Shown piece after piece: positions 7,772-59,191 of a stretch of DNA of 64,000 bases; the first letter of the stretch is position 1; every line of letters starts with the position of its first letter. Source of the DNA: Neoechinorhynchus agilis (taxonomy: Eukaryota; Animalia; Acanthocephala); NCBI GenBank assembly GCA_051530055.1, contig CM121341.1, forward strand, positions 18,454,784 through 18,518,783, read 5' to 3'. The notes under the pieces are model-generated. The model saw nothing but the letters and a program-made list of their open reading frames with translations. It was not told the origin of the DNA and searched no databases. The position numbers were made by a program, and so were the translations under genes.

Positions 7772-7911
7772 TGTGATGGCCCTTAGTTGGCTTTTATTAA
7801 ACAAAACGGACACTAATGATGGATGCACGCACCGCGCGCACATGGAAGGTTTTATATCGATGTAGCGCATAAATTAATTACGCGCATCGATCTATATCGC
7901 AATTCACATAA
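7772..7911 (-). repeat. 3' LTR
   Basis: Near-identical to 14059-14198; purine-rich ggcggaagg precedes it on the minus strand. Confidence 0.95.
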
Positions 7912-10900
7912 ACCTTCCGCCGGATTCTTTTCGGAAGCGAGTCGAGCGACGGACCAGCTTTCCGTTTTCGGATGTCCACGTCGAACCTCGTACCTGCAGC
8001 GCAGTATCCGAAGTAGTTTGTTCAGCAGGCTCGTCTGAAGTAGGTTGCCGTCAAGGTTATCTTCTTTTTCGACATCACATGTAATGTCATTCGGTACCCC
8101 ACCTTCCGGCACTTGAGATTCCTTCACTGTAACGTCCGAAGCGCTCGTATCGCAAGCGGGGGCTATTCTTTGTGTCGAGACTGAGTCCTGACGTCCATCA
8201 AGGTATTTAACTATATCGTATTTTTCATTGGTATCGATCAATTTGGATTTTTGGGCAGAATCTTCACTTTTCGATTTCGCGGGCCCATTCTTCACCCATA
8301 CGGATTCTCCAGATCGGAGCCATCTAGGAAGGTTAATTCCAATCGGTACTCTCCTTTCATAGCAGAACATTCGCTCGTGAGGTGTCTTTCCAGTAGAGGT
8401 ACAAAGCAGCGATCTTAGATTTCCCAGAGCTTGTACCAACGCTTCGTCCCACTTTGTTATTGGCCAAGACTTGTCTTCCAATGTTAGGAGGACCGTCTTC
8501 CAAAGGGTACCATTGAGACGTTCACATTGTCCATTGGCATGAGGACGATAGGAGGTTGTGTGACTTGAGCATATCCTTAGCGAAGTTAGCCAATCGCGTA
8601 ATGTTCTAGAGGTGAAGCAGGAGCCGTGATCAGAGTGGATAAAGGACGGACATCCAAAGAGCGAGAATATTCGTTCGAGGCATAATTTGACGCTGTCTGC
8701 CGAGGTGTCCTTACAAGCGAATGCTATAGGATAACGAGAAAACTCGTCTATTGCCACGAATAAATATTTGTATCCGTGCGTTGGCGTTGGTAAGGGTCCT
8801 TTGAAATCCACGGAGATTCTCTCCCAGGGCGCCATCGCTTTTATCAATTTCAAGCTCGATTGAGGTTTGAAAAAGCGAGGTTTCAAGTGGTAGCAAATGG
8901 GACATTCTGCAGTGATCTTTCGCACGTCATTCAAATCGAACGGTAAGTTTTGCTGTCGAATGAAATGAAGTAGTCTAGTGTTTCCGGGATGGCCGAGAGA
9001 CCGATGAACGTCTTTTAGTTTATTGAACGATATGTTCATTGACGCACATACATTTCTCGATAGTGCGTCCGCACTCAAATTGTCTTTGCCGGGTCGGAAT
9101 CGGATACTATAGGAGAACATCGATAACTGTAGCTTCCACCGCAAAATCCTGTCGTTCCGGATCTTCCCGGCGTGTCGTTGATTTAGCATGAAGGAAATGG
9201 AACGCTGATCTGTGATAACGGTGAAATGGCGCGTTGAGAGGTGTCACTTCTATTCTCTTATCGAATCGACTATGGCTAATGCTTCTTTTTCGATGATATG
9301 ATAGCGTTTTTCATATTTCGATAATGTTCGACTATAAAACGCTACAGGTCTGTCGTTCTGAAAAAGGGCCGCCCCTATGGCATTGTCTGACGCATCGCAT
9401 TCCAGAGTGAATTTTCCATCGTCCTCAATCGCATTCACAGTAGCTTTTTTAATATCTTCCTTCAAGCTGCGAATGACAACGATTTCTTTGTGATCAAGAG
9501 GAAAAGATACGTCGGCAGCGATTAGTGGTTGTATTTTGGTGGAATAATTAGGAATCCACCGACTGTAATACGCAAAAAATCCTAATAAACGCCTTAAGGT
9601 CGCTTTGTTCGATTGAGTTCGGATTTCGTCCAAGGGTTTAAGCCGCGAAGGATCTGGTTTCAGCTGTCCTGCGCCGATATCGTATCCTAATATTCGAATG
9701 GTTTCTCTGCAAAACGTACTCTTTGCTTCGTTCAACTTCAATCCGGCAAGCGATGTGACTTTTTAAAACGGTTTAGATTTACATCGTGTTTTTCACGGGT
9801 TTTGCCACATACAATAACGTCGTCCAAATAGGCAAAGGTAGCTTTTAATTCGTTCCCATCGATTACGTGGTTCATGAATCTCTGAAAGGCGGCCACTACA
9901 TTTGTCACTCCCATGGGGATTCGCGTAAAGCGATAGAGTTTTCCGCAAGCTTCGAAAGCTGTAAAATTGCGCTCTTTGATCTGTATAGGTACCTGATAGT
10001 AAGCGTCTTTTAGGTCTAAGTGGCTGAAATATCTATATTTTGCGATTTCGTTTACAAGAGAGCTTAATTTGGGAAGCGGATAAGCGTCCAAGTACGTGAA
10101 CCTATTTATAGTCTGCGAAAAGTCAACGACAAGTCGCTTTTTCCCATTTTCGCGCTTGACGACAATCACTTGGGCTCGCCAAGGTGAGTTCGCGGGTTCT
10201 ATGACTTGATCTCGCAATAGTCGATTGATTTCTGCACGGTTCGCTCAAATTCTCAAAGAGTAGGGGTGAATAGTGAGACTGCTTGGTATTGACCGATGCG
10301 ATTCGCAGATCTAAACTTTCCATAGTTCCTCCCGGTTTTATCCGCATCTCAGAATGTAAGCGAATAAAGGGTATTCCAAGGATAACATCGGAACATAAAT
10401 CTTCTAATACAAACAATTCCACCTTCAAATATTTTCTTTGTTCATACTGTATGTCCACCAGGCATTTTACCAACACATTTCGAGACGAATTACCCGCGGC
10501 CATCAGGACGTTGAGATTAACAGGCGTGTAACATATCCGTAGTTTTCGGCTCGCGCTCATATCGATGAAGTTTAAAACACTTCCAGTATCCACTAAAGCC
10601 GGCATTTGACCATTTGAAACATTTATTGAGATTTGAACACGTTTGTTGAACTGAGCTTCGAGATTGCTGGTCGCAAGAAAAATCGAAGATACGCTTTTAT
10701 TCGTCAATTTTCCTTTAGTCTTACAAACCCTAGCGAAGTGGCCCTGCTGGGAGCAGCAGTAACAGACGGCCTCTTTCACCGGGCACTGAAATCGAGGATG
10801 CCGTTTAAGTCCACAGAAATAGCACAGGTTAGTCCCGTTTCGTGACATTTTCGTTATTTTCGATGGCTGGGTCTTTACGGTTGCGTCACATTCAACGGTT

Positions 10901-14203: not shown

Positions 14204-16130
14204 TGATTGCAAGTTGTCAGATATCTTACCTTTAGCATACTCCTTAGTTAATAAAGCCGCTAATTCTTATGTCACACCGTTAAAACCTTCTCTCGCCTTT
14301 ATGTGGGCCGATCACTTCGTTTTCTTGGACGCCAATTCTATGTAGCCCAACGCTCTGGGGATACCCTTCTATGCAAAACCCTATCAAGCCTTCTATAGAC
14401 TGCCCGTTGCCGACAGCGACAATGAAGGGATGCTGATTTTCTTGCTACACTCAAACTTTACTCTTCAAACTGGTGGCGTACCTTTTCTAATGAGGATAAA
14501 GTACCTTGGAGATCAAAAATTACGGCTTGGTTTAAATCCTCGACTTTGGAGGATATTCTTGCTCAAACTTTTGACTTCCATTCCGCAGGCTCCTCGACCA
14601 ACGTGCCGTCAATTTGTTTTCGTAAACTAATTCGTAATCGTACTGATATCTCATTAAATGACATTCTCGAAGTTTGGTCCACAAATCCGAAATTGGGTTC
14701 GGCTAACGGCTACCCCGGGACGAAAATTTTCACCTTGCTTCCTAGGGACTGCATAATCCTCCTTGCAAAGGCTATGCTATGCTGTTCGCCATACGCGTGA
14801 AGGGTTTTCAATGTTTCTAGACGCATTTTCTTGGTCAAAAATGGCAGGAAGGCTATTGTTGAACCAAAGGATGTTCGTCCAATCTCGCTTCAAAATCCTC
14901 TAGTTAGCATATATGAACGCGCCCTTGCAAATAGGTTGAGATCTTTCATTAATGAGCATAATTGCATCTCTCCGAACTGTCATGGCTTTCTAAAGGGAAA
15001 TCAGTTCATTCTGCCCTTGCAGAGGTTTACTCCAATTTTTCCTGCTCTAACCAGCCCATGCGAGCCATTCTTGCCGTGGACATTTCTCAAGCTTTTGATA
15101 AGATTTCTCTTTCTTTTATTATTGAAATGCTTGAATTTTTCAGTCTACCTCACAATTTAATAACACGTATCCACAATATTTTATTTACAAAATCCTTTTA
15201 CTACGAAGACGACGCCTCAAAGACACTTTACTACTCGTCCAATGGTGTTCCGCGGGGTCGACTCTGTTACCTATTCTTCTCCTTATGGCATCACAATACT
15301 TGATTCAGAATTTTAAAGTTCGGGCCTCGCTCACCTGCTACGCGGATGATTTTACTTTTGTCATCTTCACCCACAGAGCAGCTAGAATGAAACTCCTGAT
15401 TGAGCAATGTATTGATTTTCTTAACTCCTTTTTATCTAAAATGAACTTATCGTTGAATAAGTCGAAATGTTTATGCATTTTTAAAGTTCGCTCAAGCAGA
15501 ATTAGGAAAGATTTAAAATCCTTTTTCAACAATTTAATGAATAACCCTGACACCTCTTCTTCAGGTTTTACGAATACACCCCTTAAAATTAAAATATTGG
15601 GTCACACCTTTACTGCTAATCTCTCGCCTAGATTAGATTTGAATAAAATGAAAAAATGCTCACTTTAGCATCGAAAAAGACGAAGCGCGCCGTTACTCTC
15701 GGGTTAAACGCTAATCAATGGCAAACTATTTACAAAAGCTGGAGCATTCCTGGCCAGGTCTTTTTTTCTCGAGGTCGCTCCCCCCGGAACAAAAGGCTTT
15801 ACTCATCAACACGTTCTGCGATATGGGCCGGAGAATTGAGGATCTTCTGCAACAGTAGACTTATGAGATGGTCTAGTTGAACGATACTGATTAGTTTCTT
15901 GTTTTGGTTTTTCTTCTCATACTGCCACATGATGAATAAATCTGTATTATTATTGGTACTGAAAATAAAACATAGAGTTAGTAAAAACATGCCGGCATCA
16001 GGATACAAAATGAAATCGATTTGGCTTGATCTTCCACCGCTTGAGTATGTGTAAAGGTGCCGTGGGTCCTATTGAAGTATGTATTGGAAATACGCAACTC
16101 CAACGCTACTGCGTAATCCAATAGTTTTAC
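14204..16130 (+). mobile_element. 3' half (RT) of the I/Jockey-like LINE begun at 5510, degenerate
   Basis: Resumes after TSD GGTTC; RT motifs RPISLQN, CHGF, VDISQAFD, NGVP, YADD; 3' end approximate. Confidence 0.8.
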
Positions 16131-16496
16131 ACCCTCGGCGTTCCTTTATCCTACACTGTGTCCTCCATGAATTCGCTCCTATCCATCTCTCGGCCCCACG
16201 TGTCCGTTGAAATCGCCGATTATCACGTATCGACCCTCCTTAGGCCTTGTCACTTCCGATAAATCCAACCAAAATTCCTCCTCCTCTGCACTACAACCGA
16301 CTTGTGGGGTGTACGCAGAAACTATTGTTGTGGCTTCGCCGTTAACGCTTAATTTCAGCGAAATTACCCGATCGCTTGTTCGTGTCACCTCTACGACGTT
16401 GTCCACTAAATCCTTTGATACTATGACGCCCACTCCGTTAATACCACTTGCTCCTCCACTATAGAACAGTTTATATCCGTCGCGTTCAATAATCAC
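16131..16496 (-). mobile_element. RTE-clade APE fragment
   Basis: DGYKLFYSG...NGVGVIV...SAYTPQVG...GDFNGHVG, homologous to 46734-47171. Confidence 0.85.
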
Positions 16497-32805: not shown

Positions 32806-32887
32806 GCTGCGATGGCCGAGTGGTTAAGGCGTCAGACTAGAAATCTGATGGGATTCTCCCGCACAGGTTCAAATCCTGTTCGCAGCG
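32806..32887 (+). tRNA. tRNA-Ser(AGA)
   Basis: Acceptor GCTGCGA/TCGCAGC, anticodon arm TCAGA-CT-AGA-AA-TCTGA, long variable arm, GTTCAAATC T-loop, oligo-T terminator downstream. Confidence 0.95.
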
Positions 32888-33510: not shown

Positions 33511-35207
33511 CGGCAAAGCATTCGAAATTCCGACCAAATGGTACGTTTTGCGAGAAAATTGATGCTGATTGTCGGCATATTGAGACAAACTCCTTTTCCT
33601 GGCATTATCCTAAACAAAGAAACATTAGTCCTTGAAAACTAGAAAATCATAATTTTTGCTGTGAAAATATTTAAAGTCAATTAAACATAAGTATAATCAA
33701 GTTATTTTGTCAATATTTGTGCCTACGACGTTACCGATATGTTACTTTTAAACCCACCGATCTTTCTTATTATTCTATCTAATTTTTCCTTAATTCGTTC
33801 TCTCGCTTAGAAATTACTCATTTGTACACACCTTGAATAATACGAAGCATTCGAATACTCATGGAGACTGGGTGCGCGAAGATTCTTGAATGCAGATACC
33901 GAAATTGATTTAGCTTTGTATTTAACTGTATTCCTTGTGCACGGATCACATGTGACTTTTGAGAAGAAATGCCGAGCGGCAAACTTACAATACTTGAATA
34001 TTTGATCTTCGGTTTGATTTAATTAGATTTTAGATATTTTTCAAATACATTCACAAGCACACTTTATTAATGGATGAATAAAATCGAATTGATTAATAGC
34101 GGCGATATTCAAGTTCATCGTTTACTCAAACATCGAACAATGTTGTGACTTTTTCTTATCACTCACACAACAAAAATATTGGTTCTCTATACCCATGGGT
34201 AATGTATTAGTGGCACCCCCTCGAGTTACCGCTCAATATCAAAGAAAAGCTTTTCTTGTGTATATTGCGCAGAATATTTCTCACCCCTCCGCAAATATCA
34301 CATCTCGTTCTCGTGCCGTATTCCGAATCGCTTCTGTTGAGTTTTCCCTCCGAGAAATTAAGGCGCTGTTATGTTGGAAAATACTCTTAAGAATTTAATG
34401 CAATTTTTACATGAGCAATGTCAATTTTTGCTTTTTAAATTGACATTTGGGCGGGCCGCGTGGAGATGTGAAGTATGTTAAGGTAGCAACATCGAAGCGG
34501 AAAGCTCCTCCAGCTTGTTGAGCGGTTCTTGGGCTTTGTCTAGCTGATGTCCAGAACTCTCCCTCTCATTGTCTGCGGAAATGCCATCCTTTCCCTTTCC
34601 AACCGCTCGGTATTTTAAGTAGTGCATCGACGATAGTTCCACCGAGTCTTTAGCCACAAATCTAACTCGCGTGGAGAGTTTCTCCGTCGCTGTGGCACAC
34701 CGAGTGGTCCAAATTCAGCGCGTTGCGAATGTGTTCGCCAAACGTTGACCAAAGACCGTTCAGTTTTCCTCGTGTAGATGACCCCGAAATTGTCATCGGT
34801 CAAAGCTGGACGAACTTTCCGGTTTGATGTCGACGCACCTTTTGGTAGGTTCCTGAAGAAGCCGTAAGACGGCAAAAGCTCGGTCCAAGTGTCAATATAA
34901 AAATTTAATCGGTCATGTTTCTGAATGGGGAAATATTAAAAAATTTGTAGTCTCAAAATTTATTATCCTTTCTTAACTTATAAACTCTCCATTCATTATG
35001 TCAATGATTTCCTTATCTGTGTTAAAATAATGTACCCAGATTTATGAATTTTCGATAGACTAACTCCAAGTATTTACGTATTCGAATAAGGATTTATAGT
35101 GCATTAAATGTTTCCGTTTGTATTTTAATTGACGACTAAATAAATGAGTTATCAGCAATCGCATTCATTTTTTAATTACGCGATTCATAACTCTCTTTTA
35201 TTAAAAT

Positions 35208-35519
35208 TTACAAGTTTTGGAAGATAATGCTCTGTGGAGCCGCGGTTTTCCTCGCGCTGGCAACATTCCCTCGTTGTACTACGAGGGAGATGTTTTGTTT
35301 AAGAAATGCTGTCGCGCGCGGGTCATTTTTCATCGCAACCGACCTCTTTGCTATATTGGATACAAGCTGAAATGCGGATTCTCCGAGGGCCCGAACGTTG
35401 GAATTGTCGATGAATGTGTTTAAAATGAGCGCCATAAACAATTTAAAGATTTCTGACACGTCATCATGGTTGTTTATGATTCTTCCCGACCATTTTGTAA
35501 TAAATGACCATTTTTCCAT
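35208..35519 (-). mobile_element. CRE-clade extreme 3' fragment
   Basis: ALGESA..FLKQNISLVVQRGNVAS. Confidence 0.75.
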
Positions 35520-35615
35520 TGGTTCCTAACTGATTAGAATGTTTTACGCCACATTACGCGACTCTGAGACTCACCAGTGTAAGATGGCGTTTCCGTGAAA
35601 TTTATGAGTGTTAAT

Positions 35616-35748
35616 CTTCCCTTCTTCCGCGCTTTCATCCACAACGCCGTCGACACGTCTTTTTCTTTTAGCTTCGTCAAAGCGCCTTTCTTCGCATGCA
35701 CACAAACGCCTTAGGTTTGAACCCTTACGATTTTCGGTTTTTCTTAGA
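35616..35748 (+). promoter_or_regulatory. Pyrimidine tract (possible 5'TOP) and acceptor-like sites upstream of eEF2
   Basis: cttcccttcttcc at about 35616; tttttcttttag (about 35670) and tttttcttag (about 35748) before the ATG. Inference only. Confidence 0.3.
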
Positions 35749-35765
35749 CAAATACAAGCCCGAAA

Positions 35766-38306
35766 ATGGTCAACTTCACAGTCGAAGAAATTCGAGGTTT
35801 AATGGACCACCGCCGTCACATTCGAAACATTAGTGTGATAGCTCATGTTGACCACGGGAAGTCCACATTAACTGATTCATTGGTTTCTAAGGGAGGGATT
35901 ATTGCTCAGGCTAAGGCTGGAGAGGTTCGCTTTACGGATACGAGGAAGGATGAACAAGAGCGATGTATTACAATCAAATCAACGGCTATTAGTCTTTATT
36001 ATGAAATAAAGGATTCAGATTTGGCGCTAATGAAGCAGGAAAAGGACGAAGGCATCAATCACGTATTGATTAATCTAATTGATAGTCCTGGGCACGTTGA
36101 TTTTTCGAGTGAAGTCACTGCCGCTCTTCGGGTTACCGATGGAGCTTTGGTTGTGGTCGATTGTGTTAGTGGCGTGTGCGTCCAGACGGAGACTGTGTTA
36201 AGACAGGCGATCGCCGAGAGGATAAAACCCATTTTATTTTTGAACAAAATGGATCGTGCTCTTCTTGAGCTTCAACTCGAGCAGGAGGAGCTGTACCAGA
36301 CGTTTCAGAGGATCGTGGAAAGTGTCAATGTTATCATCGCCACTTATGGAGATGACGGCGGTCCTATGGGTGAAGTTCAAGTTCATCCGGAACGTGGAAC
36401 TGTGGGATTCGGTGCTGGACTTCACGGGTGGGCATTTACCCTAAAGGAATTCGCTGAGATGTACGCGAGTAAGTTTGGAATCGAGATTACCAAACTGATG
36501 AAGCGTCTTTGGGGAGACAACTTTTTTAATGTCAAAACGAAAAAGTGGACTAAGAATCAATCGTCGAAAGATGACGTCCGTGGCTTCAACCAATTTATCC
36601 TTGATCCAATATTTAAGGTCCTTAAGGCAATCATGGACTGTAAGAAGGACGAATACATGAAACTGCTCGATAGGCTCAACGTCAAAGTGCCAGTTGAAGA
36701 ACGCGAAAAGCTGGATATAGGAGGCAAACCTCTTCTTAAGGCTGTGATGAGGTATTGGTTGCCCGCCGGAGATACTCTTCTAACGATGATTGCCTTGCAT
36801 TTACCTTCTCCCGTTGTTGCCCAGAAATACAGAGCAGAAATGTTGTACGAAGGACCTCACGATGACGATGCTTTTAAAGGTATCCGCGATTGTGATGTGA
36901 ACGGGCCTCTGATGATGTACATTTCTAAAATGGTACCGACATCAGAAAAAGGTCGTTTCTACGCCCTCGGACGTGTATTCTCAGGAGTTGTATCGACGGG
37001 ACAAAAGGCCAGGATAATGGGGCCAAACTACGTTCTTGGCAAAAAGGATGATTTATCGATCAAGGCTATACAAAGAACGATTATTATGATGGGTCGATAC
37101 GTTGAGACAATCCCCGAAGTGCCATGTGGAAATATCTGCGGTCTAGTTGGCGTCGATCAGTTCTTGGTAAAGACTGGTACAATCACGACCTACGAACATG
37201 CCCACAACATGAAAGTGATGAAATTCAGCGTAAGTCCCGTTGTAAGAGTTGCAGTTCAACCTAAGAATGCAGCGGATCTTCCAAAACTCGTCGAAGGACT
37301 GAAACGACTGTCAAAGAGTGACCCGATGGTACAATGTACAGCATGTGAGAGTGGAGAGCACATCATTGCCGGTGCTGGTGAACTCCACCTTGAGATTTGC
37401 TTAAAAGATCTCGAAGAAGATCACGCTGGAATTCCACTCAAGGTGTCGGATCCCGTCGTTACGTACCGTGAAACCGTTGGTGGTCAGTCAAGTGAAGTTT
37501 GCCTTTCCAAATCGCCCAACAAACACAATCGATTGTTCATGCGGGCGTGTGCAATGCCAGAAGGACTTCCGGACGATATTGAGAATGGCGAAGTAAATGA
37601 CAGACAAGAATTCAAGGCAAGGGCTCGCTATTTATCCGAAAAATACGATTACGACGTGGGTGAAGCCAGAAAGATATGGTGTTTCGGACCCGATGGAACC
37701 GGTCCGAATGTCATCATGGACTGTACTAAAGGAGTTCAATATCTTAATGAGATAAAGGACTCCGTTGTTGCTGGATTCCAATGGGCAACAAAAGAAGGTC
37801 CTCTATGTGAAGAAAATGTCAGGGGAGTCCGGTTCGACTTACTCGATGTTACTCTCCATGCCGATGCAATTCATCGTGGCGGCGGTCAGATCATCCCAAC
37901 TGCGCGACGTGTCTTGTATGCATCGATGCTGACAGCACGTCCAGGTCTCTTTGAACCTGTATATTTGGTCGAGATTCAAGTTCCCGAAGGATCCTTAGGT
38001 GGGGTTTATTCAGTTCTTAGCAGAAGACGCGGACAAGTCTTCGAAGAAAGTGCAGTGATGGGTACACCAATGTTCGTGGTGAAAGCCTATTTGCCGGTCG
38101 CAGAATCATTCAGTTTTTCGTCGGATTTGCGATCGAACACTGGAGGTCAGGCGTTTCCACAATGTGTATTTGACCATTGGCAGATGGTTACCGGCGATCC
38201 ATATGATGAGAAATCCAAGATCCGGACGATTGTTGATGAAATCCGAAAACGAAAAGGATTAAAACAATCCCTCCCCGATGTCAATGATTATTTCGATCGT
38301 CTTTAA
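35766..38306 (+). CDS. EEF2: Eukaryotic translation elongation factor 2, intact and intronless (846 aa)
   Basis: MVNFT start, [10 protein letters not shown]-loop, RFTDTR, DSPGH, NKMD, diphthamide loop [16 protein letters not shown]-terminal IRKRKGL. Confidence 0.99.
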
Positions 38307-38559
38307 GAACACCGCAGGAAAGAGAGATTTGTTAGACATAAAAATATAAGATCGTATTCTCTGGTGAATTCTGCACTGGCCTTCTTGACAGGGCAAGTTA
38401 TGCGCGAAAACTGGAGCATTTTTCCTCACTAGCAAAGTAAAGGGATTTTATTTGCTTCGCAAACAATTTGCGTTGTTCGACACTAATATATATTGTTTGT
38501 TATCAAAAGTCTCAGAGTTTTTGTTACAGGGCAGAGGAACCATGTAACCCTGGATCCTC

Positions 38560-39030
38560 GTGAACACTTACAAAAGACGGGATATTCGTAGGCAGGAGAG
38601 GGAAAAATAAAGCTGTAATAAAATTTGGAGAGATCAGGCGAAAGGATTCCTAAATGGCGGAGGCGTTTGAGGTGGTAAATTTTAAAGGTATTGCGTTAGA
38701 GAGAGTGATGTGCGAGTCCCATTTCAAGTTTGATTGAAATTGGATACCCAGAATTCTGAAAGAGGTGACTCGTCGGATGTCATTTGGAACATCCGTGTAG
38801 GATATGGGGTTGCGGGAGATTGAGGGGATCATCTCGAAGCATTTAGAGAAATTTAGATAGAGTTTGTGATTGGTGCAGAAATCATTTATGTGCGCGATTT
38901 CGTTAGACGTTAACGAGAGGGTCGAATGGTGATTGACTGATGAGATCGTCGGCTATGTGATAAGGTTATTCAAATACATCTTCCTTAAATAGAACCTCAT
39001 CTATTTGAGAGAATAGGAAGGCCGCTATAT
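38560..39030 (-). mobile_element. CR1/L2-like RT 3' fragment
   Basis: IAHINDFCTNHKLYLNFSKCFEM..FRILGIQFQSNLKWDSHI; homologous to 51984-52400 and 61995-62320. Confidence 0.8.
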
Positions 39031-39606
39031 TTTGGTTGGCAAAGTAAGACTTTTCCCCCCGTCTAATTCACATACAATTTTAAGGCAGTCTTAAAAAATC
39101 TGATTTTCTTGTAGTTTTTATTATGGAAATTCTGCCATCACAATCGGGCTATTTACGTTTACTGAATATTTGATGAACATATTTTTGGAGTCCCTCGTTT
39201 CACAGGCCATTTCTTTAAAGCGATCAGGACGAACTTTTTAATATCTACGTCGTGACACAGAAGAACTGCTTCGACTGTTGTATACGCCTCCGCATCCGTA
39301 AGTGAAGAAATTTCGATTGATTTCTGTGTGGTTTCTGCTCACTTCGTCTCATTTCTGGATATAATTAACGGGAAGAATGGGTATCGGTTTATTGTCCTCA
39401 ATATTTCGTTCGCCTCACTTCAAGTGCGAATAAAACACGTAAACATCAAATAAGGCCGATTATAGTCTAAAACTCCGGATAATGCCAAAATGAGGAAGTC
39501 TGAAGAGACGGACGAAATATTTAGATCAATATCTATTCCTCTCATCACTAAAAAGAACACATATACAAATGAACAACTTCTTTACAGATATATTAAAGTT
39601 TGTTCA

Positions 39607-40535: not shown

Positions 40536-40721
40536 TTGTTGTGCAGTGGCGACAAAAATTTGGTAAATTTATCGAATCGATATTTCGGCCCAATCCAGAG
40601 CATTCATCAAGATTATTAAAGTGTTTTATTCGCACGTTAACAATCTTGATAAAGGCTCTGGATTGAGCCGAAATATCGATTCAATAAATTTACAAAATTT
40701 TTTGTCGCCACTACACAACAA
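40536..40721. repeat. Foldback (about 88-bp inverted arms) with a hammerhead motif in each arm
   Basis: Arms 40536-40623 and 40633-40721; AAUC-UUGAU(G/A)A-A-GGCUC-UGGAUU-GAGCC-GAA-AUAU-C-GAUU at 40642-40681. Confidence 0.85.
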
Positions 40722-40925
40722 TTCAAAATATCCATCGATAGAAAGTCCTTCGGGATAATAAAATTACACTTTCGGTGAGAATAATCCCGGTCATTACATA
40801 TTTTATTTATTCAAATATTTCGCGAGGCATCCTCGCCTCTTCAGTCATTGTTTGCAAGTGCTTTGAATAAATAAAATATGTAATGACCGGGATTATTCTC
40901 ACCGAAAGTGTAATTCAAAATATCT
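40721..40925. repeat. PLE pLTR-derived foldback (about 53-bp perfect arms) enclosing a degenerate hammerhead
   Basis: Arms about 40761-40815 and 40862-40915; same family as 31690-31790; CUGAAGA-G-GCGAGG-AUG-CCUCGC-GAA on minus. Confidence 0.85.
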
Positions 40926-44339: not shown

Positions 44340-44553
44340 CTATTTGTGAAAATTTGTAAGAAATATATTCTTTACATCCTCACAATTTTATATTAAGAAT
44401 TCTACCAATAGGGCTCTGATTTACGAAATGACGAAAATAAATCAAATGCAGGGGAAAATCAACTGTGCAAATTTTAGAAGCTTTTCTATGAAACATTTCA
44501 AGGCGACGGGGTTTGTGATATGGACAGATTGCAAAAGACGGGATAACGGTTAG
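44340..44553 (-). mobile_element. CR1/L2-like RT 3' part (continuation of 51984-53100)
   Basis: YPVFCNLSISQ..RRLEMFHRKASKIC continues FILPSLTNSYP across the RTE insertion. Confidence 0.8.
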
Positions 44554-47500
44554 TCTTCTTTCTTCGTGCTTATCCCTTTTCGGGGTCGCACAAAAATGTA
44601 CAATCAAACATAGTTCATCATCATCTCTCTAGACCGCTTGTCCTCTGCAACTGCGTCTTTCCACCTTTTTTGGGTCTGCTCCGTCTCCTTGTTCCCTCAA
44701 ACTCCATTTCCACTATTTCGGATATAAATGTGTCGCGAGTTCCATTTTTTTACTTTCTCGCTCCATTTGATCCTTCGTTGCTGAATTAAGTCTTTCACAC
44801 GCACATATTTATTTGGAATAATGTCTCTCCAGGTGATTCCAGCCATCCATTGCAACATATTCATCTCGGCCACCTGCAGTCTTTTGATGTGGCTCTTCAT
44901 GGTACTCCATATCTCTGAGCCATAAATCATCGCTGGCCGTATCGCAGTCTTAAAGACTTGACCTTTTATCATCAGTGGTACCTTATCATCACAAATGATC
45001 CCTGCGAGACTTCTCCATTTCATCCACCCGTTTTGAATCCTAGCGCTTATTTCGGCTGTCATGTCGTTTCCCCTCGATACGAATGAACCCAGATATTTGA
45101 AGTTCTCAGCTTTGTTCAGTTGCGTATCTTGTAAGCAAATGCTTTTCGGTCCGACATAGACGGTTTTATCCCTCGAGATATGTAGACCATTTCCTCCCAG
45201 GGCCTATCTCCATTTTTCCAGGTCTTAATGTAGTTCTTGGCATGTATGGCTCGACAATACAATATCATCAGCAAATAAAATATTCCACGGAGCACCTCTA
45301 TTTAGCGGTTCGCTGATTACGTCCATGATTATCACGAATAAATATGGACTTAGTGCTGATCCTTGATGTAGTCCAGCTTTCACGGGGAATTCGCTCGTGT
45401 TTCCGACCGGGGTTCTTACTATTACCTTGCATTCCTTGTACATATCTTGTATTACTCGAACGTATACCGCTGGACAGAATTTCCTGCTCAGGCACATCCA
45501 TATCAGATCTCTGGGGACGGTATCGTAGGCCTTTTCGAGGTCAATGAAGACACTGTGCAGCTCTTTCTGCTTTTCATAGCACTTTTCGTACAACTGTCTC
45601 ATTGCAAATATTGCATCTATGCTACTTCTGGCTGGCATAAAGCCTCTCTGAATTTCAGATATTGATATTTCACTCCTCAAGCGTCGGCCAATTATTCGCT
45701 CGTACAGCTTCATCGTGTGACATATCAATTTGATTCCTCTGTAGCAGCTGCAATCTCTTACATCCCCTTTTCCTTTGAAAATCGGGATCATAATACTTCG
45801 CCTCCATTCGTCTGGAATCCGCCCAGCATCGAAGATACGTCGTACAAATTTAGTCAATAAATGAATAGCATCATCTCCCAAGACTTTCCAGAAATCTATA
45901 GGTATTTCATCTGGTCCGGTCGCTTTGCCGTTTTTCATTTTGGAAAGAGCTATCCTGACTTCTTATTCGATATGATTTGTAATAATCCTTGATTCAATTT
46001 TTCATTTCCACTTTTTCCTCAGCGATTTTCGGAATTCAGAAGTTGTTCGAAATAACTTTTCCATCTCTCTCGAATGTTTTCATCGTTGTGCAAAACGTTA
46101 CCTTCGTTATCTTTGACTTGCCTCACACTCGTTACGTCTTTCGATTTTTGGTCTTTGATTCTTCCAACTTTGAATACATACGAATTTCCTTCCTCCTGTA
46201 TCCTCGAATAGAAAGCCGCATCTGCTTCTTGCTTCGAAATCATCACCGTTACCTTTGCTCTTCTTTTGGCCTCCTTGTATATTTTCTTGTTTTCCTCAAA
46301 TCTATCAAGGTCCATCTTTTTTTGGCCTCTTTTTTGGCTGTCACTGCTATCCGGACTGCATCGTTCCACTACCAAGTTGTCCTTTTAGGTCCTTTTCTCC
46401 CGGAGGTTTGCCCGAAAGTTTCCCTTCCGACGCACCGTATGAACTCTGCTGTTTTAGTCCACCAAACATTAGGGTCCTCGATGTCATACTCTATATTGCC
46501 GATCACCATCTTCTTGAACTTGTCTCAACTTTGCGGTTCTTCGACGCGCCACCATTTGATCTTGCGATTTGTCTGATATTTTCTTCGATTGATGTTTCGA
46601 ATTTGAAGATCAATCAATAATGGTCGATGTTCTGTGGTGCATATTTCTCCTAGAACAATTTTTGAGTCTAACTTCTTTCCGTTTACTTTGTGGATACAGA
46701 ATGTAGTCGATTTGAGTTTGTCGTCCACCGCTACTATGTGACAAGGTGTCTCGTCGGTTTCTGAAGGAATGTGTTTGCGATCCTCAAATCGTTTGCTAAT
46801 GCGAAATCCACAATACATTCGCCCTTCTGATTTCTGTTTCCGAGGCCCTTTCTGCCATGCACTTGGTGACATCCTACGTTCTCAGCTCCCACGTGACCAT
46901 TGAAATCCCCACAAACAGCATATCGATCCTCTTTCGTTACATTTCGCATAACGTCATACAAGTCTTCCCAAAACTCGTCTTTCTCCTGCTGTGGAAGGCC
47001 GGCTTGTGGAGCATAACAGGACACTATTACCATACATTGACCTCCAAGATCTATCCTCATCCACATCATTTTATCGCTTTTTCGGTTCACTTCGATCACT
47101 CTGTCTGTATACGTGTTGCTCAAAATTACTCCGACCCCATTTCGTCCGGTTGGTGTTCCATTGTAGAACAACTTATAACTGTGGTAAGTACGCTATTGAT
47201 TGGGCTAGCGTAAATGGGCATAAAATAGTGTGTGTTGTACAAAAACAGTTTTGTTGAAATAAACTGGTCGGCTGTTTGGTTCATCCACCATGTCAACATC
47301 TGGCGACGAGGACAAACGGAAGACATGGATGGAGGGTATCATGGGACAGCAGAAGGTGTGGATGGAAGAGATGTTCAAAATGGTGTCCAAGGCCCAGATT
47401 GAACAGAAAAATGTGACACGGGGAGCACAGATAACCCCATTCCGCACTTTCGATGGAGTCGAGAACTGGGCCGAGTACGTAGAACAAGCCGAAGCCCACA

Positions 47501-50500
47501 TGGAAATCAATGGAATCAAAGAAAGCGACGAACAAAAGCGTAGATCTTGTCTATTGGCCTGGATGGGTCCAAAGATTTACACAGAGCTAAAGAAGATGGT
47601 AGCCGGCCGACCGTTCGACGAAGTCAGCTATGTAGATGTCAAGTCGCTGATTGACGCTCACGTAGCACAGCCAATGCGCCAGATAACGGCGCGCTACCTC
47701 TTTAGTACATGCCGTAAAGCAGAAGGACAAACTCACGCCGAGTGGGCTACAGCACTACGAGGAGCTGCACGAGGATGCGGTTTCTACAACAAGGAAGTTA
47801 AGGATGAACGATCAGCGGTCGACGAAAGGATTAAAGATCATATTATCGTGGCGACACCTTTGAAAGCTTTAAGAAAAGCTGCGATGCAAGGCAAGGATTC
47901 AGCATCATTGGAGGAAGTCTTAAAGATTGCCGAAGCGATCGAGGTAGCAGAAAAGGCGAGTGAGCTGTTATGTGATTCAAAAAGTAACGAGCGTTCGGAT
48001 CAAAGAGGAGAGGTCGAGGTTGATCGAATAATAAGAAGTCAAAGGTTCCCAAGGAAATCAGAGGATAAGCGAGTACAAGAACCGAAAGAGAAGTTCGGTA
48101 ATCGATGTGGAAAGTACGGATTCGTTCATCGAGATAAAGTTCAATGTCCGGCAAGTAGAGGAAAATGTTACATGTGTGGTATCAGCGGACATTTTGCCCG
48201 AATGTGTAGAAAAGCGGGGGTTAGACAAGTAGAAGCTGTAAAAGGAGTGCAGCCTAGAGAGGATGAGTGGGAACTTAATAAAGGTTATGGTTGTTATGGG
48301 CTAATCTGCACTGCAAATGACGAGGGTAATCGAGCAGAAATAACGGCGAGGGTCGATGGATGTCAAGTGACAATGAATTTTGATACTGGCGCGGAAGTTA
48401 GTATCATCGACGAGGATATGTGGAATAGGATCGGAAAGCCGAGTTTGAAAGCGACGAAGCGATTGAAGGCGTTTGGAGGATCCGAAATCGACTGACTGGG
48501 CAAGTGCAAAGTGAGAATCGAAACAAGAGGGATAAAGAAGAATTCAGTGGTGCACGTGGTAAAAGGAACGAAGGGATGTTTATGGGGGATTGACTGGATA
48601 AAGCTGTTTGATATGGAGTTACCCCTTTCAGTGATCGTCAGGGGAATAAAGACCGTACAGGAGTCAGTGGATGAGATGCTAAAACAGCTTAAAGTACTTT
48701 TCGAGGAGAAGTGTACCCCCATCAGGAATTTCAGAGTAACACTGCCGATTGCAGACGGTGCTCAGCCCACGTGGATACCAGCGAGGAGAGTGCCGTGGGC
48801 ATTACAGGATGCGGTAGTTAAAGAAATGGAACGATTGACGAACAAGGGGGTATTGGAACGAGTGGAGACAGGCGACACAAATTTAGAATGGGGAACCCCT
48901 ATGGTCATCACGAAGAAAAGTAATGGACAAATACGAATCTGTGCGGATTTCAGAATCACCATCAATAAAGCTTTAAGGCAGGACAGCTATCATATGCCAA
49001 CTTTCGACGACATGCTACAGAGATTGGGGAATGGCAAGAAGTACTCTACTATTGATTTATCGGATGCTTACTTGCAGTTAGAGGTGGCAGACGACCATAG
49101 GAAACTCCTAAATATATCGACTCCATGGGGATTGTTCCGGTACCGGAGGATGCCGTTCGGACTAAGTTGCGCTCCGCAGATATTCCAGAAATTTATAGAC
49201 AATTTGTTGATAGATATCCCAAGTACCGGAGCTTATCTCGACGATATAATTATCTCCGGAAAGAATGACGCAGAACATCTCCAAAATTTAAAGGCAGTGC
49301 TCGAGCGACTTGAGGAGGCAGGGATAGGCATCAAAAGAGATAAATGTAGATTTATGGAAGCACAGGTGAGGTATTTGGGGCACAGCTTGGAAGACGGGAA
49401 AATAAAACCGCAAGGAGAAAAGGTGACTGCGATAACGTCGGCGCGATACCCACGAAATAAAAAAAGAGCTTAAGTCGTTCATCGGTATGGTCAACTATCT
49501 AGAACGCCTCATTCCCGAATTGCAATCTCACTGCAAGGGATTGTATGCGTTACTGAAACAAGGAGTTCCGTGGAAATGGGGAAAGTATGAGAAGGACATC
49601 TTCGATGGAGTAAAGCGAGTGGTCCAAAATCACAAGGTCTTAGTACCTTTCGATATCAAAAGAATGACTGTGCTGACATGCGACGCAAGCGAAGAAGGAA
49701 TTGGTGCGGGATTGTTCCATAAGAAGGAAGATGGGAGCAAAGAACCGATCATGTTTGTATCCCGGACACTTACCTCAGCGGAAAAGAAATACGCGACTAT
49801 AGAAAAGGAAGCTTTAGCAATCGTCAGCTCGATCAAGAGGTTCCACCAATTCTTATATGGACATCGATTCATCTTAGAGACCGATCACAAACCCCTGAAG
49901 CATATTTTTGGAATGCGGTTGTCCAAGATGACGAATAATCGACTGGTACGCTGGGGCCTGTTCTTGAATCAATACGACTTTGAGATCGAATATGTTCAAG
50001 GGGTGAACAAATGTGCTGATTTTTTGTCGAGATTTCCGGTAGACCCTCCAAAGCAGAAATACTCAGAGGAGGAGACAATAACGCTACGAATGGTGCAAGA
50101 GGAGAAGGTGGAGGCTTGCGGTTTAACGGAGTCAAGATTGAAAGCGGAATCGATTAAAGATCGTCAACTGGTAAGGATTGGACGATATTTGCAGCTCGGA
50201 TGGCCGAAAACGATGCTCGATACGGACAGGCAGTTCGCGGCCCGAGCAGATGAGTTATCCTGCGAAAACGGCATTGTCATGCACTTACAAAGAATTGTCA
50301 TCCCATTTTCTCTTAGAAAGGAAGTGTTAGATATGTTACATCGTGGTCATCCAGGAATTGAAGGCACAAAAGCTCTATGCCGATATTACGCATGGTGGCC
50401 CGGTATAGAAGATGACATACGGCGGAAGGTAGAAGGTTGCGAAAGGTGCCAAATAGCCCGACCAAATATTCAACAACTGCCGCTTATACCTTGGGACTAT

Positions 50501-51983
50501 CCGGCGGAAGTGTGGGAGCGCGTGCACATCGATTTGGCGGGACCGACAAACTCCAAGATGTATTTGGCGATCGTAGATGCAAGGAGTAAGTGGCCCGAGG
50601 TTTGGTTCTTCAATACATGCAAAATAACATCCGAAATGGTGATCGATCGGATGAGGGAAACATTTGCTCGATTCGGGACTCCAAAGAAAATTGTGAGCGA
50701 TAACGGGCCTCAATTTATGTCGCAACAGTTCAAGGCGTTTGGCGAAGAAAATGGGATCGAGATCATAAAGGCGAGTCCTTACCACCCACAAACGAATGGG
50801 TTGGTAGAACGATTTATAGGAACCCTTAAACGACGCGGAATGGCAGGGGAAGGAATGGATACTCGAAGGGCACTTACGGAATTTCTACAAACATACAGAA
50901 ACACGCATCATGCAATCACAGGAAAAGCTCCAGCAGAAATGATGTTAGGGAGGAGGATGAATACAGTGTTCGACAATATCAGACCAAATACAGAGGAAAC
51001 AGTGCGAAACAGGACAGCGCGAAGACAGAGGCAGAGACCAGATGAGCGTTATCGCGAGTTTGGGGAAGGCAATGAAGTGTGGTGGAAAAAAGGAAGAGCT
51101 GGGAAATGGCAAAAGGGAGTCGTGGAGCAACGATCAGGACCGGTGTCCTATCGAATCGTGGATAAAAAAAGGAACGCAAAATAGGGCGCACGGGGATCTC
51201 GTGAGGAAAAGGGAAGAAGACTACGAAGAATGTGAACAAGAAAAGGATAATGTAAGCATAAAGGTTGAAGAGGAAGAACTTCAAAGGAAGGTAGAGTTCG
51301 ATGCAGAAGATGGAGGTGAAGTCACGAAATCATGGCAGGCCGAGATGCAATCGAAGTTAAAGAAGGACGAGGACCGAGAGCACGCAACACCTTTCTTAAG
51401 GAGAAGTCAACGTCATCGGAGGCCTCCTATACGGCCGTACGACGAATACCGCAAAATAGGTTAGGAATTTGCGGGGGAGGAAATGTGGTAAGTACGCTAT
51501 TGATTGGGCTAGCGTAAATGGGCATAAAATAGTGTGTGTTGTACAAAAACAGTTTTGTTGAAATAAACTGGTCGGCTGTTTGGTTCATCCACCATGTCAA
51601 CAATAACCATCACCCAATTCCCTTACTTTTCATCCCCTCCACCTCAGTTCCTGGACACATAGAATACCAATCTTTCTTCGCTTCATCCTATCTACAACCT
51701 CCATTGATTTCCCTGTCATCGTACCCACGTTGAGGGTTCCGACTCTTATATTTCGCTGCTTCGTAAATTTTTGCTATTTCGTTAAATTATACACAGAGTC
51801 CGAGCGTATTCTCTGCGCGTCGCCTACGGGGAACGCCTTAGTCCGAGGTCTTGTAATCGTTTGATTGTTTATTTTCGGTTTTATTGGAGCGAAATGTTTT
51901 ACAGCCGGATGCCCTTCCTGCAGCCAACCTTCCCCATTTATCCGGGCGTGGGACCGGCATCAGGCTTCCCCGATGGCTGGGTT
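44554..51983 (-). mobile_element. Full-length (about 3.0 kb net) degenerate RTE-clade LINE inserted in an L2-like element and interrupted by an LTR element
   Basis: 16-bp TSD acgggataac(g/t)gttag at 44538-44553 and 51984-51999; APE (ILCVQE..GDGYKLFYNG..GDFNGHVG), RT (GLHQGSALSP, FADD); 3' end gcgaccccgaaaagggataagcacgaagaaagaaga. Confidence 0.93.
47180..51602 (+). mobile_element. Mag-like Ty3/gypsy LTR retrotransposon with identical LTRs
   Basis: 119-bp identical LTRs 47180-47298 and 51484-51602; TSD ATAAC; PBS TGGCGACGAGG at 47301; PPT gcgggggaggaaa; single gag-pol (CYMCGISGHFARMC, FDTGA, YLDD, ETDHKPL, HPG..CERC, SDNGPQF) broken by TGA at 48493 and two +1 A indels. Confidence 0.97.
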
Positions 51984-51984
51984 A
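51924..51984 (-). ncRNA. Twister ribozyme motif (type P1) at the RTE 5' end
   Basis: U^AAC CCA GCC [AUCGGG-GAAG-CCUGAU] GCCGG UCCC AC GC CCGG AUAAA UGGG GA AGG: P2 CCCA/UGGG, P3, P4 CCGG/CCGG and twister-conserved UAA, GCC, UCCC, GC, AUAAA all present; two core substitutions. Confidence 0.85.
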
Positions 51985-53100
51985 CGGGATAACTGTTAGT
52001 GAGGGAGGGTAAAATAAAGCTGTTGTGAAATTTGGAGAGAGCGTATGATTTGGATACGAAATGGCGGAGGCGTTTGAGGAGGTAAATGTTAAAGCTATTG
52101 CGCTTGAGGGAAAGTGTAATGCACGAGTCCCATTTAAGATTTGATTGAAATTGGAGACCCAGAATTCTGATGTCTTTTGGAAGATCGAGGTAGGATATGA
52201 GGTTGCGGGAGATTGAGGGGATCATTTCGAAGCATTTAGAGAAATTTAGATAGAGTTTGTGATTGGCGCATAAATCGTTTATGTGTGCGATTTCGTTAGA
52301 GGTTAAGGAGAGGGAAAGGTGGGATGATGATTGGGCCATTAGGGTGGGATCGTCGGCGTACAAGAAAAGCTTAGAATGAGAGGAAAGAGGTTTAAGTTCG
52401 TTGAGGAAATTATTAAAAAAAAGTGGTGACAGGACGGCACTCTGAGGTACGATTAGGTGAGCGATAGGGTGATCGAAAAGCTAACCCGGCAACGAATATA
52501 TTGTTGACGATTGTGAAGAAAAGAAAGGGGCCAAGCAGTTAATATGGCACGAGTTTAGACCGAAATTGGAATAGGTCTGAAGAAGTAGTGGGTTGCCTAC
52601 GTAATCGAATGCTTTCGATAAGTCCAGGTGAATGGGCCGAGTGACGTGGGTGGGATTACTGTCGAGGTTACGTAGGAATGTGTCGTAAATGCGAAAGCAG
52701 GACATCGGTTGCTGAAAATTTGGGTCAGAAGCCGAATTTTAGAGGCGGTAGCTTATTTTTGAGAAATGGAAAAGGCGTGTTTTGAAACATTTTTCGGTAT
52801 TTGTTAAAATAGTGGGTACAATGGATATTGGACGGAAAAATTGGACGAATCTTTTATTGTGTGTTTTACGGTGAACACGTCGATCACTTAGTGTAACACT
52901 GTCAAATATCAGTTGACGCAGCACCTCTTCATTGTAAATAAGCTGAATTTTTGTGGCTGATACGCTTGTGCTATCATCAATATTCGTCTGATGGATCGTA
53001 GGCGGTTTAATTGCATTTTGTGTGTTGTTGGCCTTTTCCTTCGTGAAATCTGCTCTACACGGTTGGAACCACCACAGTTGCCACATTTAAATGTTTTTTC
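51984..53100 (-). mobile_element. CR1/L2-like RT fragment (5' part of the RTE target)
   Basis: RPISIVP, LDLSKAFD, YADDPT, RILGLQFQSNLKW. Confidence 0.85.
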
Positions 53101-53436: not shown

Positions 53437-53710
53437 TTTTGACTTTTGGTGAAGATACTCCCAGTTAAAAATCATTTTATTCTTCTGAAATATTTCGCGA
53501 ATAAACCTCGCCTTCTCAATCATTGTAAAATCATTTTATTTTTCTGAAATATTTCGCGAGGAATCTAATCGACTGATTAATTTACAATGATTGAGAAGGC
53601 AAGGTTTCCTCGCGAAATATTTCAGAGGAATAAAATATTTTTTAACCGGGAGTATCTTCATCATAAGTCAAAATTTAACATCCCGATGGATTTTCTCGAT
53701 ATGATTAAAT
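53437..53710. repeat. PLE pLTR-derived foldback with hammerhead-like arms
   Basis: Arms about 53437-53529 and 53579-53672 plus a partial internal duplicate; UGA-UUGAGAA-GGCGAGG..CCUCGC-GAA-AUAU-U-UCA. Confidence 0.8.
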
Positions 53711-58300: not shown

Positions 58301-59117
58301 TTTTATCCACTTCCACATAATTAAGAACAGCGGTCTGCCGATAAAATGCCAATTTAATTTTCAAGGCGCCATCGGTATTTCGAATCGTCGACGAGAGGCC
58401 GGTTTTGCGTTTAATCGGGAGGGTGGGCACAAATAATTATTTTCTTTATCATTATTAAAACAGGTCGTTAAAGTACTGATTTTCAAAGACAAGGGGATGT
58501 CCATTCGGGTGGGAATCGGTGGTTATTGTCTGTGGGAGATTTATTTGATTTTGGTTGATTAATTGTGAATTTAAGAACGTTTATTTGTTTTATGATTCCA
58601 ATTTTTTATCGACAATAATCCAACAGAAACATTCACACCACCGCTCTAGATCTCTAGCTGTTTTCCGTTCTTTCCTCCGAATCAAATCGCAAGTCGAGAT
58701 CGACTGGTAAATTCGACAAAGCAGTCAGAATCCCAACGTGCTGATCGTCTCATGCGCAGTAAAGGGCATACTTTCAGAAATAGATTTATCTTGAAAATGT
58801 TCGGTCTTTTCGTTCGCCTTCTTCAGTAAATCTACAATTATAAAAATTTAATATTTTCAAAGAAGCATGGTCAAATAGTTTATCCGGTTGGACTCGCAGA
58901 CTGAGTTTGTGGTCAACGAAAAGGCCGAAAATTTTCAAGATAAATATATTTTTTCTGACAATAATGAAGTACAGGACGTGCATCACCACCGTCCGCAAAA
59001 TTGGAATCGCTAATTATATTATTGAATAATTTCTTTACAAGGGTCATAATGTCGGCAGTTTCAAAGCAGATCCATCGTTGAGCTCACTCCGCTGGCGATT
59101 AAGGTCAGAATCCCCTG

Positions 59118-59191
59118 TGGCCAAGGTGGGGCTCGAACCCACGACATCCACCTTATTGGAGTGACGCTCTAACCGACTGAGCTACTCGGCC
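59118..59191 (-). tRNA. tRNA-Ile(AAT) with C at position 33
   Basis: GGCCGAG/CTTGGCC acceptor, intact D and T arms (GTGGG-TTCGAGC-CCCAC), anticodon loop CC-AAT-AA. Confidence 0.85.

Follow-up and report, generated by a model that had tools for sequence, protein, structure and literature searches.

A predicted twister ribozyme at the 5′ boundary of an RTE retrotransposon copy in the acanthocephalan Neoechinorhynchus agilis

The closest described system to the element studied here is Perere-3 of Schistosoma mansoni. Twister variants lie upstream of all 113 full-length copies of Perere-3, and the target-site duplications (TSDs) of these copies adjoin the AA at the cleavage site (Liu et al. 2021, PMC8501958). 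The TSD of Perere-3 contributes a strand of the P1 stem, and both co-transcription and cleavage, in vitro and in reporters, have been demonstrated (PMC8501958). Truncated, catalytically competent twisters have also been described as conserved at the 5′ end of the RTE superfamily, citing work in preparation (de la Peña et al. 2020, PMC7761336), and some RTE elements, as well as R2, L1Tc and Baggins, have at their 5′ end a ribozyme resembling that of hepatitis delta virus (HDV) (PMC6765202). Here, we compare with these systems an RTE copy on the minus strand of a 64,000 nt stretch of Neoechinorhynchus agilis DNA (assembly GCA_051530055.1, contig CM121341.1, positions 18,454,784 to 18,518,783), which is called the window below and whose own numbering is used throughout. 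An earlier reading made from the sequence only, which cited the Perere-3 precedent accurately (Liu et al. 2021, PMC8501958), had placed a twister at the 5′ end of this copy. We consider it very probable that the copy is the fossil of a full-length N. agilis RTE insertion whose RNA template was freed by the twister from a read-through transcript.

The N. agilis element resembles Perere-3 in that a type-P1 twister heads an RTE with an apurinic/apyrimidinic endonuclease (APE) and a reverse transcriptase (RT), the TSD abuts AA, and the target gives the nucleotide before the cleavage site (N-1) and the would-be P1 strand. Further likenesses are the 3′ strand of P1 (UUGG), the L4 motif GUCCCAAGC and the GAGGG motif (each with one substitution in the window copy) and a short simple-repeat 3′ tail. 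The two elements differ in their hosts, which belong to Platyhelminthes for Perere-3 and to Acanthocephala for the window, in P2 (CUCC/GGAG and CCCA/UGGG, respectively) and in P3, which is short in the window and of unrelated sequence. GTAA repeats form the tail of Perere-3 (PMC8501958), whereas that of the window RTE is of the GAA type. The window RTE would work like Perere-3 but is not Perere-3, being set apart by host, stems and tail. It is also an instance of the statement of de la Peña et al. (2020), with which our data agree: P1 pairing is at chance level across insertion sites, and twisters head catfish and many other eukaryotic RTEs; that source, however, comes without taxa, sequences or junction analysis. 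The likeness to the HDV-like ribozymes is that a 5′ ribozyme would free the RNA of a promoter-less long interspersed nuclear element (LINE) from a co-transcript and stay on the element RNA, but the folds are unrelated, and R2 is site-specific, whereas the window RTE is not. The mechanism itself is already known from Perere-3 and the RTE superfamily, and the new aspects are the host phylum and the breadth. Ribozyme-defined RTE 5′ ends are not peculiar to schistosomes, and extend to Acanthocephala, teleost fish and many other eukaryotes. In the literature searched, acanthocephalans are not mentioned with twisters, and twisters are not linked to Rex3-type fish elements. The window locus is an unusually clean case, with a boundary at a single nucleotide, an empty-site paralog and a younger nested insertion.

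Twister fold and element boundary

The sequence-only reading had proposed a complete twister fold and had named a covariance-model search beforehand as a check on it. This search returned Rfam RF03160, the type-P1 twister (Table 1). The match found with cmscan covers all 68 model positions (1–68) with a score of 51.9 bits, and the E value is 6e-11 in a local scan of 351 nt and 1.1e-8 over the whole window, where it is the only twister. Permissive filters are needed to reveal it; a default scan of the window at the Rfam gathering threshold, which is an operational criterion and not a biological one, reports no twister. RTE-type twisters in general score below this cut-off, owing to their lack of P1 and their variable P3, and an apparently intact young copy in the catfish Hemibagrus guttatus scores only 41.6 bits. 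For annotation, this means that the gathering threshold misses the whole class, in which even intact copies reach 42–52 bits.

The L1 triplet UAA of the model is aligned to U51984-A51983-A51982, which places an N^A dinucleotide at the predicted cleavage step. Both halves of the T2 pseudoknot are there, namely the GC of L2 that follows P2 and the GC of ...ACGC, and the T2 pair is invariant in the 24-sequence alignment described below. The minimum-free-energy fold of the window copy recovers P2, P3 and P4. Its folding energy is no better than that of shuffled sequences (z = 0.45) and is uninformative here; the grounds for the twister call are therefore the covariance model together with homology and covariation. 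On this comparative basis, the twister-P1 identity of the segment is confirmed.

The boundaries of the element are given by a 17 nt direct repeat on the minus strand, ACTAAC[A/C]GTTATCCCGT, of which 16 positions are identical between the two copies. The 16 bp described earlier are these 17 bp minus the leading A, which could also be tail sequence. The 5′ copy is followed by A51983, whereas a C follows the 3′ copy, which makes the element boundary unambiguous. Since the edge of the TSD lies at U51984, the first element nucleotide is the A directly 3′ of the predicted scissile bond, and the earlier assignment of the first nucleotide to the A of U^AAC holds, both by the 16/17 repeat and by an empty-site paralog. 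U-1 and the 5′ strand of P1 (CCCG) lie inside the TSD and are therefore target-derived, as had also been proposed. The target is an older LINE that resumes past the 3′ TSD, from 44537 downward, and its diverged paralog within the window runs …ATATCCCGT|CTTTTGTAA… continuously over the reconstructed empty site. A chance juxtaposition, in which a twister-like sequence happens to stand beside an unrelated direct repeat, would agree with a score under the Rfam gathering cut-off and with a folding energy no better than that of shuffles. However, this explanation is effectively refuted by the E value over the window, by the repeat itself (a 16/17 match is expected a mean of 0.03 times in shuffles, and none of 100 shuffles gave two), by the APE–RT coding sequence and conserved RTE 3′ end between the repeats, by the empty-site paralog, and by the same architecture at independent loci.

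Table 1. Features of the RTE copy, its twister and its target in the window (window numbering; RNA letters for the ribozyme parts).
Feature	Position	Strand	Basis or remark
Type-P1 twister ribozyme (predicted)	51988..51924	(-)	cmscan, Rfam RF03160
P1, CCCG/UUGG	51988-51985/51927-51924	(-)	C-G, C-G, C·U mismatch, G·U
U-1; A1	51984; 51983	(-)	scissile step of the model
P2 CCCA/UGGG; P3 CAUCGG/CUGAUG; P4 CCGG/CCGG		(-)	RF03160 alignment
L4 GUCCCACGC, then AUAAA; L1-3′ GAAGG		(-)	RF03160 alignment
Predicted scissile bond U51984^A51983 = RTE 5′ boundary	51983..51984	(-)	U-A step of the model and TSD edge
Post-twister hairpin (…GCAGGA AGGGCA UCCGGC…), then GUAAAAC	51896..51923	(-)	pair counts
RTE 5′ segment: twister, post-twister hairpin, ~225 nt 5′ untranslated region (UTR), start of APE coding (…IRVGTLNVGTMTGKS…)	51603..51983	(-)	
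RTE 3′ segment: remaining APE, RT, 3′ UTR, tail	44555..47179	(-)	
RTE 3′ end: conserved GCGACCCCGAAAAGGGATAAGC stem-loop region, then GAAGAAAGAAG tail	44555..44589	(-)	aligned with 3′ ends of L001 and L005
5′ TSD copy ACTAACAGTTATCCCGT	51984..52000	(-)	supplies U-1 and P1 5′ strand
3′ TSD copy ACTAACCGTTATCCCGT	44538..44554	(-)	one mismatch to 5′ copy
Target: C-terminal part of RT (YADD…) of an older non-LTR retrotransposon	52001..52363	(-)	same orientation as RTE
Diverged target paralog (~80%), empty-site reference	38568..38921	(-)	uninterrupted at the insertion point
Nested long terminal repeat (LTR) retrotransposon (gag-PR-RT-RH-IN) splitting the RTE	47180..51602	(+)	TSD and LTRs

The window copy deviates from the consensus at two core sites, GUCCCA-C-GC and GA-A-GG. 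The sequence-only reading had pointed out both, as UCCCAC and GAAGG, and both are real in the RF03160 alignment. In twisters, T1 is formed by CCCA of L4 with AGGG of L1, T2 is formed by GC, and the second A of L4 forms a conserved U•A pair that extends P4 (PMC5408937). Through the change of GAGGG to GAAGG in the window copy, one of the three Watson–Crick pairs of T1 becomes a C·A mismatch and two are kept; the mismatch is the sole unpaired T1 cell among the 24 aligned sequences. The change of GUCCCAAGC to GUCCCACGC removes the A of the conserved L4 U•A pair. Exhaustive mutagenesis of Osa-1-4 showed that T1 and T2 are the most sensitive parts and that non-pairing bases diminish activity (PMC5113685). 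The motifs are canonical (GUCCCAAGC and GAGGG) in L001 and L005, two relatives that were found via their proteins alone. Since these relatives are canonical and the open reading frame (ORF) of the same window copy is wrecked, the two substitutions are most likely post-insertion mutations. They concern only the current cleavage ability of the fossil copy and not the parental transcript.

The proposal that the target completes P1 stands only for the origin of the strand, because completion itself is at chance. Across 61 distinct insertion sites, the target DNA forms 1.79 of the 4 P1 pairs, compared with 1.82–2.00 for shifted controls, and the three of four pairs in the window are unremarkable. 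At position -1, these sites have 26 T, 22 A, 7 C and 6 G, a mild A/T excess relative to the flank composition. P1 completion by target DNA is accidental, and a target choice by the RTE that completes P1 was rejected on the same pairing counts. P1 is dispensable, as P1-less twisters cleave at a near wild-type rate (PMC5408937). With P1 both at chance level and dispensable, the weak P1 of the window gives no reason to expect attenuation; that part of the earlier suggestion falls away, and the part about the two core substitutions keeps its bearing on the current cleavage of the fossil copy.

Recurrence of the 5′ end and conservation of the fold

In a collection of 5.8 billion proteins, no N. agilis protein of this RTE family was found (top identity 56%), and exact-sequence look-ups of the RTE RT fragment and of the ORF for elongation factor 2 (EF-2) in the window matched no record. 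As the test of recurrence, junctions of the N. agilis family were replaced by related loci and a pattern scan of metagenomes. L001 (ENA ERZ25878500; GC content 38%) contains an RTE with 56% APE identity and 64–67% DNA identity to the window RTE, including the 5′ UTR. This RTE is inserted in a 90 bp satellite array (6900–7132 and 10228–10272), the neighbouring units of which serve as built-in empty-site references. Its 13 bp TSD, AGTAGGTTCATGA, ends at |AACUCGGCC, and its tail is GGAAAGAAGAAGAAG. The L001 twister is decayed (26.3 bits), with P3 deleted and an insertion in P4. L005 is the H. guttatus RTE, which codes for an intact protein of 996 amino acids with 41% identity to the window RTE. 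Its twister (E value 4.9e-6) ends 43 nt upstream of the ORF, and a perfect 17 bp TSD, GATTTATGCCACTGAAA, ends within the run of A residues where cleavage would occur. The L005 tail is (GAA)n. T1, T2 and L4 are conserved in both loci.

The metagenome scan used the pattern GTCCCAAGCCCNGNTAAANNNNGAGGGTTG and yielded at least 120 loci. The pattern demanded a canonical L4 and GAGGGUUG, so T1, T2 and most of P4 are uninformative in these loci, and conservation of these parts was judged only from L001 and L005. Three metagenomic families have 17, 10 and 6 distinct upstream flanks (33 insertion sites), and all of them begin at AA. The mean pairwise identity within the three families is 0.29–0.32 over positions -30 to -1 and 1.0 at +1 and +2, and the value of 1.0 persists through +5 in the two larger families. 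Truncation at the 5′ end is possible anywhere in the ~3 kb of an RTE, yet the identical start position recurs. Copies that extend upstream of the AAC, which the earlier reading had named as a sign against it, were not seen in L001, in L005 or at the 33 sites. For annotation, the 5′ end of a full-length RTE can be called to the nucleotide from its ribozyme.

Among the metagenome loci, 49 extend for at least 900 nt past the twister, and 12 of these encode an RTE APE/RT on the same strand. The other 37 have no RTE ORF and resemble short non-autonomous elements with a shared twister head. In L106 (~7900–8100), twister units of ~110 nt stand head to tail (…GACCAATT|AATCCTGCC…). L106 and the ORF-less loci suggest that short non-autonomous elements or tandem twister repeats ride on the RTE machinery, and annotation should expect twister-headed short elements as common non-autonomous riders.

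We used MAFFT to align the window copy and other RTE-type twisters, 24 non-redundant sequences in total. In this alignment, 96% of the cells are paired, compared with 85% for shuffles and at most 64% for slid partners. All four P2 pairs show compensatory changes across the 24 copies, the variants being CCCA/UGGG, UGUG/CACA, GCUA/UAGC, UCUA/UAGA, CCAA/UUGG, CUCC/GGAG and UCCU/AGGA. As judged from the alignment, the catalytic fold is under selection. An alternative source of the same 5′ end would be an internal promoter that starts the RNA at the A of AAC, in which case the twister-like sequence would be a structured 5′ UTR or a translation element. TSD ends show where the template RNA began and not how this end arose, P1 completion by target DNA is no commoner than chance, a conserved hairpin follows the ribozyme, and a connection of LINE 5′ ribozymes with translation initiation has been reported (PMC8501958; PMC7761336), all of which would agree with a promoter. 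However, the nucleotides conserved across phyla are those at catalytic or tertiary-contact positions (T1, T2, L4 and A1), and P2 co-varies, which is hard to explain without cleavage. In addition, RTEs are reported to lack promoters of their own (PMC6765202), and cleavage and co-transcription have been shown experimentally for the homologous arrangement in Perere-3. We therefore regard an internal promoter as improbable. Release of the transcript by self-cleavage, as proposed in the sequence-only reading, is the best-supported account, in which cleavage is deduced from homology and from the work of Liu et al. (2021).

Several points weigh against release by self-cleavage. The twister score of 51.9 bits is below the Rfam gathering score of 67.2. 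A single N. agilis copy was examined, and the family is absent among annotated proteins. In both L001 and L005, the boundary is exact only to within one A. With the C·A mismatch in T1 and the lost L4 adenine, the window copy may not cleave now, and cleavage and RNA 5′ ends in this lineage are predicted from homology. Finally, members of the clade can do without the ribozyme, as three RTEs with 47–53% identity (L002, L003 and L004) have other 5′ modules. No twister is found at the 5′ ends of these three, which are unusable as junction evidence. The 5′ ends of L003 (5750–6000) and L004 (5750–5960) consist of ~80 nt tandem units, GGGTAGATAGAG.TCGTTAGCC…CTCTGATTT, and that of L002 (1–130) consists of ~40 nt tandem units; none of these repeats matches an Rfam family. 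The 5′ module of the RTE clade thus appears to be exchangeable. In the window itself, a fragment of a second, different RTE-like APE (15994–16481, minus strand; 46% identity to the RTE studied here) is 5′-truncated and has no upstream twister remnant.

Proposed insertion route and the post-twister segment

In the route that we propose, a parental copy would have been co-transcribed with upstream host or transposable-element sequence. The twister, which makes up the ~60 nt at the head of the element, would then fold (P2-P3-P4 with the pseudoknots T1 and T2) and cut between N-1 and the first A, a step for which P1 would not be needed. The processed RNA, beginning with 5′-AAC…, would be translated into the APE–RT protein. 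Target-primed reverse transcription would reach the first nucleotide, and a staggered second nick would generate the 16–17 bp TSD. The new copy would accordingly start at A51983 abutting the TSD, which by chance would give U-1 and a partial P1 strand. Decay would follow, with the two ribozyme-core substitutions, loss of the start codon, frameshifts and stops, and later the nested LTR insertion. Cleavage, co-transcription and any role in translation are attributed to this lineage by homology and by the work on Perere-3.

A variant of this route, compatible with it, is that cleavage is real but has been selected mainly for cap-independent translation of APE–RT, with the definition of the 5′ end as a by-product. 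Downstream expression in the Perere-3 reporters required cleavage (PMC8501958), the L005 ORF begins 43 nt past the ribozyme, right after the hairpin and GUAAAAC, and L003 and L004 retain the post-twister segment without a twister. On the other hand, the distance to the ORF start is more than 200 nt in the window and in L001, and 37 of the 49 twister-headed metagenome loci have no ORF, so that 5′ processing alone apparently suffices to keep the ribozyme. We regard selection mainly for translation as possible, though doubtful, and continue with release from a read-through transcript as the preferred reading.

Directly 3′ of the twister, most RTE-type twister families have a hairpin whose stem contains a bulged A, with (G/A)UAAAA after it, and the stem sequences differ between families (GUCAGGA…UCCGGC, GUUAGGUUU…AAACCGGC, GUUAGGC…GCCAAC and GUGGGG…CCCCAC). 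This hairpin lies at 2459–2486 in L005 and at ~7183–7215 in L001, and it is also found in most of the loci L006–L125. Pair counting over 18 sequences gives 83% paired cells, compared with at most 45% for slid partners, and three co-varying pairs; this support is moderate only, and with RNAalifold alone it is limited to the inner three pairs. The segment persists in L003 and L004, though tandem repeats replace their twister. Tentatively, the twister may form the front part of a conserved 5′ module whose second part, the hairpin, is a separate functional RNA element. Its role would be, for example, ribosome recruitment on an uncapped 5′-OH RNA or recognition of the template 5′ end by the RT. Instead, the hairpin might correspond to P0, an optional stem in the twister consensus as first described.

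The 3′ end also carries a shared motif. GCGACCCC·GAA·AGGGA·AGC before (GAA)n is common to the window (44555–44589, minus strand), L001 (10190–10227) and L005 (5480–5521), and it is kept between window and catfish despite a protein identity of ~41%. This 3′-terminal motif is a candidate RT-recognition stem-loop. The window RTE thus resembles the catfish RTE in its twister head, its post-twister CAGGAAGGGCAUCCGGC·GUAAAACAUU segment, its GCGACCCC…AGGGA 3′ motif and its (GAA)n tail, and differs from it in that the protein identity is only ~41%. Fish Rex3-type RTEs, the subject of Volff et al. in 1999, reportedly have GAA-repeat tails and 10–14 bp TSDs. The name Rex3 is a lead here and not a classification. 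N. agilis is an eoacanthocephalan parasite of fish. An old horizontal transfer between host and parasite is a weaker possibility for the fish-like character of the RTE, that is, for the 5′ and 3′ RNA motifs seen in the catfish.

Body of the element and other features of the window

With the nested insert removed by joining its flanks, the RTE is 3,001 nt long. Its 5′ segment is homologous at the DNA level to the 5′ UTRs of L001 and L005, and the APE domain downstream of the 5′ UTR starts with …IRVGTLNVGTMTGKSMEVVDRMKRRKIGILCVQELRW… (minus strand). Pfam identifies RVT_1 (2e-25) and Exo_endo_phos_2 (3.9e-5, below the Pfam cut-off on this fragment), and the translated RTE is 40–47% identical to proteins that carry PF03372 and PF00078, in alignments that span as much as 100% of the query. 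The best protein matches are fish RTEs at 40–47% and one ENA metagenome contig at 56%. The element terminates with …GCGACCCCGAAAAGGGATAAGCACGAAGAAAGAAG at 44555, and the tail is of the (GAA)n type. Membership in the RTE clade is indicated by an APE followed by an RT in a single ORF of a ~3 kb element, by a short simple-repeat tail and by variable TSDs at non-specific sites (16–17 bp in the window, 13 bp in L001 and 17 bp in L005, at unrelated sites).

The window copy is a dead element. At least four frame changes and three in-frame stops disrupt its reading frame, the start codon is ATA where the relative L001 has ATG, and an LTR element is nested inside the copy. The nested element has a length of 4.4 kb and sits in the APE region, with three near-contiguous ORFs for gag, protease (PR), RT, RNase H (RH) and integrase (IN). 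Its LTRs are unusually short (~120 bp) and 99% identical, and it is flanked by the 5 bp TSD ATAAC at 47175–47179 and 51603–51607. The nested element is clearly younger than the RTE that it splits.

The only evident host gene of the window, which is otherwise filled with retroelements, is that for EF-2. Its ORF (35766–38306, plus strand) is complete, codes for 846 amino acids, and is uninterrupted and intronless-looking; it is 100% identical to N. agilis ACOME3_004436, which is annotated with 854 amino acids. The genomic locus of that protein (CM121341.1, 18,489,387–18,494,089) agrees at 100% with window positions 34604–39306. Two tRNA genes, tRNA-Ser(AGA) at 32806–32887 (plus strand) and tRNA-Ile(AAU) at 59117–59191 (minus strand), lie among the transposable elements. 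Lastly, long, near-perfect hairpins at 53497–53620 and 40583–40917 match plant and animal microRNA (miRNA) families only weakly and below threshold, and they are probably inverted-repeat or miniature inverted-repeat transposable element (MITE)-like sequences and not miRNA genes.

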